A stretch of 63,946 nt of DNA, filler included, from Lenisia limosa (taxonomy: Eukaryota > Protista > Breviatea): assembly GCA_001655205.1 (NCBI GenBank). It is 7 parts of 7 records of this genome, joined end to end, with 100 filler letters (N's around TTAATTAATTAA, not from the genome) between each part and the next. Parts side by side here need not be neighbours in the genome. Positions count along the whole stretch, not along the records: positions 34,890 to 57,532 come from LPNZ01004093.1; 6 more parts are not named here. One strand, 5' to 3'. Shown piece after piece: positions 44,953 through 47,900 of this stretch. The notes beneath the pieces are model-generated. The model was not told where the DNA came from. It was given only the letters and a program-made list of their open reading frames with translations, and ran no database searches. The position numbers were made by a program, and so were the translations under genes. The first letter of the stretch is position 1; every line of letters begins with the position of its first letter.

Positions 44953-47900
44953 ATGACTTTCCAGGCCAACAAGGTTGCTATGGAGGGCAATACTGCCGCT
45001 GCTTGGGGTGCATGTTTGTGGGAAAAGAAAACATCTTTGCTGACGACGTCTCCCTGCTTCTCTAACTCTTTAGACGCTTGCTCTGAGAACGCTATCATTT
45101 ATCCCATTACTCGTAAGCAAAGGGAGCCACGGATGGGGTTTTTTTTCTCCATCCAGCACTTTGTTCTCATCTGACATCATCAGCTTCTTCTGCCGCTGCT
45201 GAAACCTGTGATGAGTGGGCTGCAGCTGGTCGCACGAACGTCTGGGGTGACGTTCTCAACATCAAACAGCTCCAATCCGAGGCTGGTGTCGCCGGTTTGT
45301 TGTTGTTGTGCGTCTGTGCCTCTCACTCGCCTTTCCAGGTGCTGTCCATGGTTCTCTTGCTGCTGGTGCTCTCACAACCACCTTCACCACTTCCCAAGGA
45401 TTGTGGGAGGGATGGCTGAATATGTTGTTTTGGTGTATTTTGAAATATTTCTTGATTCTCTTGTTGTCTTTGACTAATTCTCTTTATTGGAGCACTTCTT
45501 TTTGACTTCGTAGCCTCCTTATGCTTGTAAGTGGGGTAAAAATGAGAAACTGTTCTCAGGGTATCTGACTTGGACTCGGCCATTTACATCTTGCTTTGCC
45601 GTCGCCTTCTTCGTCTCATGTTCCAGCCCAACATGTTCCGTATTGCTGGTGGACAGTTCCCCGCTGTTTTCCACGTGCCCACTCGCTGCGTGCAGAACTC
45701 TGGTGGAACCATGTGGGCTCGGGCCTCAGTTTGTCGGAATTTTTATTTGGAACATTCTAGAACATTTTTCAGCAATCAAGATGGTGTCCGTTCGGTAGTG
45801 ACAGAGTAGGTACGGAGACCACGCTGATGTGATGGCTACTCGTGCCTCCGGTTTTGCCCTCCTCGGCTCCTCAACTGTCCAGGTCGGGGGAACTACATCA
45901 CGCTACGTTTTACTGAATTTCTTCCGTACAACGTGTTTTTGGGATGCGTTGCTGCAGAAGCGACTGGCCTGGCTTTGTAATGTTGTTTTCAACCCTCGTG
46001 TTGCTAGCCAACAGAGTTGATTTTATTTTTTATATATTTTGCTTCATACCCCCCTCTCCCCCTGATCACTTAGGAATGCATGGATCTCGGTATCATTTCT
46101 CACATGGCCACTCTAAACGCCTCTATTCCCTTCGTGCACTTCTACGAAGGCTTCATGATCTCCCACGAGGTCAGCTCCTACTTTATCACTCCTCTCTTTG
46201 ATTTTCGTATTTATTTTTATCACACATTGCACAGTTTCTCACATATGTATTACATTGTAGTTCAACACCTTGTCAACAGTTGAGTACCCCCTTATCAAGG
46301 ATCTTCTTAACCACAACGCCATTAAGGGCTTCCGTGACCGGTGGGGGGGGGGTAACGTTAGAGCTTCACTCTGACCAGAAAAATTACTATCAACAACTCA
46401 GGAGACTCTCTGCGCAATTCAATGCTCCAAGTAATTAATTGCAATCAACTTTTCGAAATGATTTTCAGAGAGTAGAAATTAATTTGTTTTAATTGGAGTG
46501 AGACATCATTTTTATTTACTATCTAGTGCCCTTAACCCCCTCCACCCCCACATGCGAGGATACGCCATGTCACAGGACGTGTACATGCAGAACTTCGAGT
46601 CCACCAACCTTGCCTACGACGCCATTCCCGGCCACGTGCAGCAGGTTGGCCTTACTCCAATCGCTCATCCCACTCATTTTGCGGCCATTTCTCACCTTTC
46701 AGGCTATGAATGACTTTGGCGAGGCTACTGGTCGCCAATACAAGCTCTTCGAGTACATTGGAGACCCCAAGGCTGAGCGTGTCATTGTAAGCGAACCATC
46801 GTTTATCTATTACCATCGTTTATCTATTGATCAATCCGCCTTATGCACAAGGTTATGATTGGTGGATCTTCCCAGACCGTTGCCTCGACTGTCAACAAGA
46901 TGAACGAGTCCGGCGAGAAGGTTGGCACGTTTATGGCGTTTTGTGAGTAATGGTTTGATCAAGCTTGTTGACGCCATTTTTGGAGAGTTGACGATTTTAG
47001 GTTGGTGTTGTGCGTGTGCATCTGTGGCGCCCCTTCTCCCTCGACAACTTCGTTGAGGCCCTTCCCACTTCTGTCAAGCGCATCGCCGTCATGGACAGGT
47101 CAGCCAAGCCTTCTTGCAACATGGTGTTTTAGCAGTGTTCTGACCCCTGCAGAACCAAGGAGCCCGGAGCCATTGGCGACCCTCTTCTTCTTGACGTCAC
47201 CACCGCCATCCACCAGGCCAAGATCGACGCCGAAGTCGTTGGTGGCCGCTACGGTTCGCTCTCATATGCAACTTTCGGCAAAGCAATTTCGTTATCTTGG
47301 ACCATACGCGCCTCTTTTTTTTTTTGTATAGTATCTTGCTTCCTCCACTGTCACNNNNNNNNNNNNNNNNNNNNNNNNNNNNNNNNNNNNNNNNNNNNNN
47401 NNNNNNNNNNTTTTAGGACTCGGAGGAAAGGAGTTCACCCCTGCCAATGTTTCCTCAATCTTCGACAACCTCAAGGTAAGCTCCGCTGCAACCAGATAGC
47501 ATCACTGACTTGTTCAGGCTGAGAAGCCTCGCACCAACTTCTCTGTCGGCATCAATGATGACGTCACTCACCGTTCCCTCCCCGAAGGCAAGCACTTCAA
47601 CGTGCTCCCCAAGAACACCACCGAATGCCTCTTCTGGTAAGACATCTGGGCAAATGGATTCATTTTAGTTTCTGCAAAGTAACATTTCAGGGGCTTCTCT
47701 TCCGACGGTACTATCGGTGCTAACCGCGTGGCCCTCTCCCTCCTTGTCGACAACACTGACCTTCATGGACAGGCCAACTTCTTCTTTGACCCCCATAAGG
47801 TATGCTTATATTATTCTGAATTTCAATCACACGAGTTACTCTCGGTTATGGGTTCTTCAACCGAGCCAGGTTTTGAACTACACCCCNNNNNNNNNNNNNN

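Follow-up and report, generated by a model that had tools for sequence, protein, structure and literature searches.

A spliced, expressed pyruvate:ferredoxin oxidoreductase paralogue of Lenisia limosa has a rebuilt side-chain pocket and may prefer another 2-oxoacid

The window analysed here is a stretch of 63,946 nucleotides, filler included, made of seven joined records of the breviate Lenisia limosa (assembly GCA_001655205.1). One of its pieces, LPNZ01004093.1 (positions 34890-57532), carries two tandem genes for pyruvate:ferredoxin oxidoreductases (PFORs), here called PFOR1 and PFOR2. As judged by alignment, the side-chain pocket of PFOR1 is rebuilt and more hydrophobic, and pyruvate may not be the 2-oxoacid that the enzyme prefers, with pyruvate use still compatible with its sequence. 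The reading that we tentatively favour, giving it a little less than an even chance, is that PFOR1 is an active organellar 2-oxoacid:ferredoxin oxidoreductase (OFOR) with a re-specified hydrophobic side-chain pocket.

In the PFOR of Desulfovibrio africanus (DaPFOR), Thr31 and Arg114 recognise the carboxylate of the substrate, and a narrow pocket walled by Leu121, Ala219, Ile843, Asn996 and Met1202 surrounds the pyruvate methyl group (PMC5020499, on the OFORs of S. tokodaii). The same study reports that specificity shifts in StOFOR1 when the equivalents of Ile843 and Asn996 are mutated. Residue numbers were taken from alignments to PDB sequences, in which the Arg of HVPTR is Arg114, NSGGTM corresponds to 118-123, EGFMISHE to 172-179 and RGYAMSQD to 216-223. 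All four wall segments (Leu121, Ala219, Ile843, Asn996) are altered in PFOR1. The direct wall replacement is Leu121 by Gly, and near Ala219, Ile843 and Asn996 adjoining residues are replaced, so that PFOR1 departs from the pyruvate-type pocket (these four residues together with ALSIF, GTAQN, CSSI and DTEVYSN). The initial annotation had pointed to the GGTM loop, YEGFMISHE, the RGYAMSQD segment, GCSLIWSA, HSLFEDAAE and DNGLYSN, and every one of these is present (Table 1). It had also assigned the ALSIF loop to the lining of the side-chain pocket, which is right for Leu121, a methyl-pocket wall in DaPFOR (PMC5020499). The alignment to solved PFORs that it proposed as a check places Gly at Leu121 and the RGYAM segment at Thr218-Ala219-Gln220.

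The replacements were set against about 350 PFORs retrieved by word searches with P0004, P0122 and P0008 as seeds (best 120 each). These covered bacteria, archaea, some eukaryotes (Entamoeba, Perkinsus, Archamoebae-type fusions) and the crystallised Moorella enzyme, with 286-351 other PFORs aligned per position. Leu121 (Gly in PFOR1) and Ile123 (Met) were each found in 329 of 329 reference sequences, and Ser842 (Leu) in 336 of 336. Position 120 is solely Ala or Ser in the references and Gly in PFOR1, while Ser122 (317/329) is replaced by Thr and Phe124 (327/329) by Tyr. Beyond the loop, PFOR1 carries Met for Arg175 (348/349), Tyr for Thr218 (337/351), Met for Gln220 (348/351), Gln for Glu817 (341/342), Ser for Gly845 (333/336), Asn for Thr991 (284/288) and Gly for Glu992 (276/288). 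Even the most divergent functional PFORs (YdbK, Entamoeba, Perkinsus-type) read …ALSIFGDH. By alignment, the replacement pattern in PFOR1 is far beyond chance. Among columns conserved at 95% or more, PFOR1 was changed in 7 of 12 lying within 2-3 residues on either side of the four wall residues versus 51 of 280 elsewhere, a post hoc test with an odds ratio of about 5-6 and p of about 0.003.

The direction of the change in pocket size is less simple than the replacement of ALSI by GGTM had suggested. From standard side-chain volumes rather than a structure, the loop loses about 110 cubic angstroms, and Tyr218, Met220 and Leu842 together gain about 170. A pocket described as 'enlarged', as initially proposed, is therefore an unsafe reading, since T218Y, Q220M and S842L add bulk; the rebuilding itself, with four wall segments altered, holds, and we prefer 'reshaped, more hydrophobic'. 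No Arg or Lys occurs among the pocket replacements, which argues against a dicarboxylate substrate. The branched-chain substrate suggested at the outset was a guess, and no residue pattern links PFOR1 to any given substrate.

By sequence, PFOR1 belongs to the fused homodimer-type PFOR family (NifJ/YdbK, TIGR02176). TIGR02176 (NCBIfam) is matched co-linearly by 23 of the 30 PFOR1 exons scanned, from profile position 29 to 1066. Added up, the scores of the 23 exons reach about 648 bits, an exon-by-exon figure to be read beside a whole-protein equivalog cut-off of 911.35 bits. The spliced alignment spans YdbK residues 2-1166, with domains I-II-III-IV-V-VI co-linear in one polypeptide, in agreement with the fused scaffold assumed earlier. 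Pfam searches with single exons returned POR_N and Fer4, PDB sequence matches were PFORs only (1B0P family, 6CIN, 7PLM), and identity to ordinary PFORs is about 47-49%. The gene ends without a C-terminal reductase fusion, its stop preceding the PFOR2 ATG at 52840. Pyruvate:NADP+ oxidoreductase (PNO) identity was rejected, as an NADPH-cytochrome P450 reductase-like domain is missing before that stop.

Thr31, Glu64, Arg114, Ala219, Cys840, Ile843, Asp963 and Asn996 are retained, as are all 12 Fe-S cysteines of the three [4Fe-4S] clusters and the GDG…N motif for thiamine diphosphate (TPP) and Mg. The conservation noted earlier was thus confirmed for Thr in YPITP, Arg in HV..R, Glu in SEAG and Asn in SNTGG. 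The coenzyme A (CoA) P-loop of domain III (loop GxGxDGTVGANK, PMC8091585) still reads SDGTxGAN; its changed Gly is at least 95% conserved, and part of domain III lies inside an assembly gap.

PFOR1 is intact, transcribed and correctly spliced. Contigs from two runs of a single study, X1 on polyA RNA and X2 on DNA, were placed on 44900-50890. The RNA contigs omit exactly the predicted PFOR1 introns, which the DNA contigs retain, and fifteen listed splice joints were confirmed by RNA contigs. Among others these were 45712 to 45810, 45882 to 46074, 46169 to 46261, 46340 to 46527 and 49607 to 49662, with 49900 to 50016, 50080 to 50213, 50303 to 50507, 50607 to 50669 and 50778 to 50857 further downstream. 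The first of them removes a 97-nt GT..AG intron and creates GGTM/YGDH; it occurs in X1 and is absent from X2. As the joints are absent from the DNA contigs, they come from spliced mRNA and not from DNA carry-over in the RNA library. A pseudogene was ruled out by the intact, spliced reading frame.

Across columns conserved at 95% or more, PFOR1 was changed in 49 of 299 (16%), compared with 13% for P0004, 10% for YdbK, 9% for PFOR2 and a set median of 1.4%. This is the sample's highest share and would suit a duplicate under relaxed constraint, with catalysis impaired or lost, that may have been kept for a regulatory function or as PFOR2's partner, structural or in a heterodimer. The same idea would account for Glu817 to Gln, Arg175 to Met and the P-loop Gly to Ser, for the long terminal branch of PFOR1 and for its tandem position with a paralogue retaining the canonical loop. 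We nevertheless regard it as improbable: about 1180 codons in 42 exons run without a stop, frameshift or broken splice site, the gene is transcribed and correctly spliced, and the 12 cluster cysteines, the GDG motif, Thr31, Glu64, Arg114 and Asn996 are all kept. YdbK stands at 10% of the same columns, so that 16% is extreme yet within range.

PFOR2 provides a local control. It starts 355 nt downstream of PFOR1 on the same strand, has similar intron density and is 45% identical to PFOR1, with a terminal branch of like length (0.73 vs 0.74 for PFOR1). PFOR2 retains HVAARAVSMQALSI (HVAARA…ALSI, the canonical Leu121 loop), FFEGFRLSHE and a canonical P-loop, and over shared conserved columns it is changed in 9 of 122, versus 22 of 122 in PFOR1. 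Its Ala219 segment deviates, with LGPSHQPETNWQ for the near-invariant RGTAQNPDxYFQ (Arg216 to Leu, Thr218 to Pro, Ala219 to Ser, Gln220 to His). The tree places PFOR1 and PFOR2 with two partial sequences of Perkinsus type, P0004 and P0008, in one poorly resolved basal set. A recent tandem duplication was rejected on the 45% identity and on the tree, where PFOR1 and PFOR2 are not resolved as sisters, indicating that the duplication is old. Because the Ala219 segment enters the partner's active site and is unusual in both paralogues, the two proteins might, more speculatively, pair as a heterodimer whose two active sites differ.

The first exon of PFOR1 encodes a 34-residue presequence, MLRLPSMLARVATSGFSATRMASASLLGATRTYT, with four Arg, zero acidic residues and an end of the form R-x-Y/T (R-T-Y/T), an R-3 cleavage motif. 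An RNA contig reaches 129 letters upstream of 44965, and these match 44854-44883, so the first exon is in the mRNA. From its composition, the presequence is a probable mitochondrion-type targeting peptide. The N-terminus of PFOR2, MASMAFASGKTPLTNRMF followed by AKQ…, may be a short presequence.

It is quite possible that PFOR1 is still the organellar pyruvate enzyme and that the pocket changes are lineage-specific compensating drift, with Gly121 accommodating Tyr218, Met220 and Leu842. Every head-group and cofactor residue is kept, the bulk lost in the loop is offset by gains on adjoining walls, and the presequence is clear. Pyruvate is oxidised by all characterised PFORs (PMC13768988), and OFORs with other, wider pockets, such as the archaeal ones, still accept it (PMC5020499). 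The deviating Ala219 segment of PFOR2 suggests that this segment may be relaxed in the lineage. Against such drift, Leu121, Ile123 and Ser842 are invariant in 329-336 PFORs, long-branch functional enzymes included, which indicates strong constraint wherever the substrate is pyruvate. PFOR2 keeps the ALSI loop, and the joint change of four wall segments looks directional.

Re-specification of the pocket, the reading that we favour, would make PFOR1 a working, expressed paralogue that is probably imported into the mitochondrion-related organelle (MRO). The family chemistry would be retained: TPP would be bound and activated, three [4Fe-4S] clusters carried, the substrate head held by Thr31, Arg114 and Asn996, and most of the CoA P-loop kept. 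With the walls rebuilt at Leu121 (Gly), Ile123 (Met), Thr218 (Tyr), Gln220 (Met), Ser842 (Leu) and Thr991/Glu992/Val993 (Asn/Gly/Leu), preference would have shifted or broadened to uncharged side chains larger than methyl. Candidate substrates are 2-oxobutyrate and the branched-chain, methylthio or aromatic 2-oxoacids from amino-acid breakdown, and the predicted products are acyl-CoA, CO2 and reduced ferredoxin.

Several observations weigh against this reading. PFOR1 is the most divergent row of the sample and its changes are not all pocket-specific, with Glu817 to Gln near the proximal cluster, the P-loop Gly to Ser and Arg175 to Met among those outside the pocket. The enrichment near the walls was tested on a finding picked for these very motifs. 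With bulk added on some walls, the net geometry would not be predictable from sequence. A targeting peptide clearer on PFOR1 would suit the main hydrogenosomal pyruvate enzyme, and single-exon queries, a weak search, found no PFOR1 orthologue with the motif.

Some of the changes lie beside the TPP diphosphate site and the proximal cluster (GETPY to PQTSY, GCSSIWGG to GCSLIWSA, DTEV to DNGL, PCINHG to PCLGHG) and the CoA P-loop is altered, as might be seen if PFOR1 had moved to other chemistry, for example a reaction that dispenses with CoA or a chiefly reductive one (2-oxoacid synthase) with altered cluster or TPP tuning. This seems very unlikely to us: the P-loop is mostly intact (SDGTxGAN), the sequence indicates no specific alternative reaction, and the CoA-independent precedent, oxalate oxidoreductase, belongs to a different, multi-subunit branch.

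No other sequence in the retrieved set of roughly 350 PFORs had the PFOR1 pocket, and the best 120 of each of the three word searches held no breviate, parabasalid or diplomonad pyruvate:ferredoxin oxidoreductase (PFO). A degenerate DNA pattern for GGTMYGDH gave, among the matches listed, one place in JGI metagenomes (unrelated frame, not a PFOR) and three places in 185,579 prokaryotic species genomes (unrelated frames, no PFOR). A representative search with the exon at 46528-46644 (RGYAMSQD) returned seven canonical-type fragments, none with RGYAMSQD, and PFOR1 itself was absent from the results too. Contigs encoding the window open reading frame (ORF) 49110-49658 were not found, and the same search with P0004 gave a 2-kb fragment only. 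These searches show a pocket that, by sequence matching, is rare among prokaryotes and metagenomes; related protists are hardly reached by single-exon queries.

P0004 (JGI contig Ga0394902_010267, locus L002), a Perkinsus-related fragment, reads LDGFVVSHQ and RGTNQNQD; another eukaryotic lineage therefore shows both a hydrophobic residue in place of Arg175 and a varying Ala219 position. Among the word-search sequences, P0135-P0142 (some 1600 residues long; several are EukProt entries, the rest come from ENA, JGI or Logan) carry a C-terminal pyridine-nucleotide-disulfide/GltD-like module (PF07992, PF14691) behind a PFOR, an arrangement unlike PNO with its cytochrome P450 reductase; ALCIFGDH is the loop sequence of these proteins.

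Compared with the crystallised PFORs of D. africanus (1B0P, 2C3P) and Moorella thermoacetica (6CIN-6CIQ), PFOR1 is alike in domain order, the three Fe-S motifs and the GDG motif, and shares Thr31, Glu64, Arg114, Ala219, Ile843 and Asn996. It differs from both at 120-123, 175, 218, 220, 817, 842, 845, 991 and 992, and, coming from a eukaryote, additionally has 41 introns and a presequence. The broad-specificity StOFOR1/2 of S. tokodaii, like PFOR1, keep the carboxylate-binding Thr and Arg in side-chain surroundings unlike those of DaPFOR, and their different pocket gives a wider substrate range (PMC5020499). Unlike PFOR1, they are two-subunit enzymes with a single cluster, another domain order and the pocket residues Ser, Thr, Asp', Lys and Leu. 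PNO of Euglena, Cryptosporidium and Perkinsus has a eukaryotic PFOR module as in PFOR1, with a cytochrome-P450-reductase domain that PFOR1 is without. Hydrogenosomal or MRO PFO paralogues of anaerobic protists resemble PFOR1 in being eukaryotic, unfused and multiple and in probably bearing an organelle presequence. For breviates, a 2026 preprint infers three ancient copies of PFO.

We found no published PFO paralogue bearing a PFOR1-type pocket. That PFOR1 is the first fused homodimer-type PFOR re-specified off pyruvate, a dedicated organellar oxidoreductase for amino-acid-derived 2-oxoacids and ferredoxin in an anaerobic protist, is a rather doubtful proposition. Alternative 2-ketoacid oxidoreductase activities are reported for anaerobic protists, and if the proposition is true, PFOR1 would supply a gene for them. 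The specificity of fused PFORs is thought to be set by a small, extremely conserved pocket, on which PFOR1 would be a natural experiment in OFOR specificity. It could also reveal how amino-acid carbon enters the ferredoxin/hydrogen metabolism of such protists. Automatic annotation would label PFOR1 "pyruvate:ferredoxin oxidoreductase" and miss the pocket difference.

Table 1. Coordinates of features at the PFOR1-PFOR2 locus, counted along the window.
Feature	Position	Strand	Remarks
PFOR1 gene	44782-52485	+	42 exons, ~1214 codons, stop 52483-52485; spliced alignment and hand refinement
PFOR1 first exon, presequence	44782-44883	+	34 N-terminal residues; frame open from ATG at 44782
YPITP (Thr31 equivalent)	45100-45185	+	split by intron 45113-45183; Thr in 304/304 references
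QSEAG (Glu64 equivalent, TPP-activating glutamate)	45273-45287	+	retained
Exon with Arg114 equivalent and rebuilt loop	45627-45712	+	last codon split; 1b0p residues 94-115; donor RNA-confirmed
Loop motif (GGTM/YGDH)	45672-45712 and 45810-45822	+	split by 97-nt intron
Next exon, finishing the loop	45810-45882	+	RNA joints 45712 to 45810 and 45882 to 46074
YEGFMISHE for FDGFRTSHE	46143-46169	+	Arg175 to Met, Thr176 to Ile
Ala219 segment (RGYAMSQD), canonical RGTAQNPDIYFQ	46555-46590	+	Ala219 kept; Thr218 to Tyr, Gln220 to Met, Asn221 to Ser, Pro222 to Gln
Domain III P-loop (CoA phosphate binding)	47692-47727	+	mostly retained vs canonical GLGSDGTVGANK; one Gly to Ser
Assembly gap (N)	47887-48118		hides ~36 codons of PFOR1 domain III
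First ferredoxin-type CxxCxxCxxxC	49252-49284	+	
Second CxxCxxCxxxC	49536-49568	+	
GACAGC, two proximal-cluster ligands	49877-49894	+	then PQTSY for GETPY (Glu817 to Gln)
GCSLIWSA	50079-50080 and 50213-50234	+	intron 50081-50212, joint RNA-supported; Cys840, Ile843 kept; Ser842 to Leu, Gly845 to Ser
HSLFEDAAE for NSLFEDNAE	50292-50303 and 50507-50521	+	intron 50304-50506, joint RNA-supported
TPP/Mg motif	51049-51078	+	canonical
DNGLYSN segment for DTEVYSNTGGQ	51212-51244 (DNGLYSN 51212-51232)	+	Asn996 kept; Thr991 to Asn, Glu992 to Gly, Val993 to Leu
VPCLGHG, fourth proximal-cluster ligand	51905-51925	+	ligand retained; INH to LGH
PFOR2, tandem paralogue	52840-57532	+	cut by edge of piece before TPP domain

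The PFOR locus is eukaryotic, with many short introns. The ORF listing for 34890-57532 (about 44% G+C) gave no long bacterial-style ORF, and six-frame translation spread the PFOR motifs across short coding blocks of the + strand with shifting frames. A prokaryotic reading was ruled out by this absence, PFOR1 being interrupted by 41 introns. The tandem pair was seen by tblastn with E. coli YdbK (PFOR1 at about 44.8-52.5 kb, PFOR2 from about 52.8 kb). The gene model was built with a purpose-written protein-to-DNA spliced aligner allowing GT/GC..AG introns in all three phases, with YdbK and P0004 (a 642-residue eukaryote-type PFOR fragment) as references, and exons were then refined by hand. The resulting gene extends well beyond the span first noted, 45627-46620, which takes in the N-terminal motifs only. 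Exons have a median of about 85 nt and introns, all GT..AG, of about 81 nt.

RNA loose ends at 47799 and 48262 mark domain III coding sequence absent from the assembly, and the other two N runs within PFOR1 (47355-47410 and 51503-51560) are intronic. For the 56-N gap 47355-47410, a DNA contig of X2 shows 22 true bases, TATTGTCAGTCCATTGTGACAG. A 13-nt micro-exon at 45514-45526 (…F LLM L…), with GT..AG flanks, is required for the frame and for the conserved GLLLM(I/L)PNM; it is spanned by no RNA contig. Two intronic segments, 45940-46024 and 50377-50413, have DNA-run depths of about 19,800 and about 8,300 versus about 35 elsewhere, and DNA contigs link the two with each other and with further sequence; the pattern resembles a dispersed repeat of high copy number.

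Upstream on the + strand, at about 41100-43850, lie exon-like blocks of ankyrin-repeat-like character (…LLEAGAQ…, …LLLAAGANVHAV…, …LYATKRGNVDVCRALLSRGASP…), with a single weak Pfam Ank match (E = 0.002, below cut-off). In the same region, 43362-43526 holds a short peptide-level repeat, LHPFGCLSRE…, in three copies.

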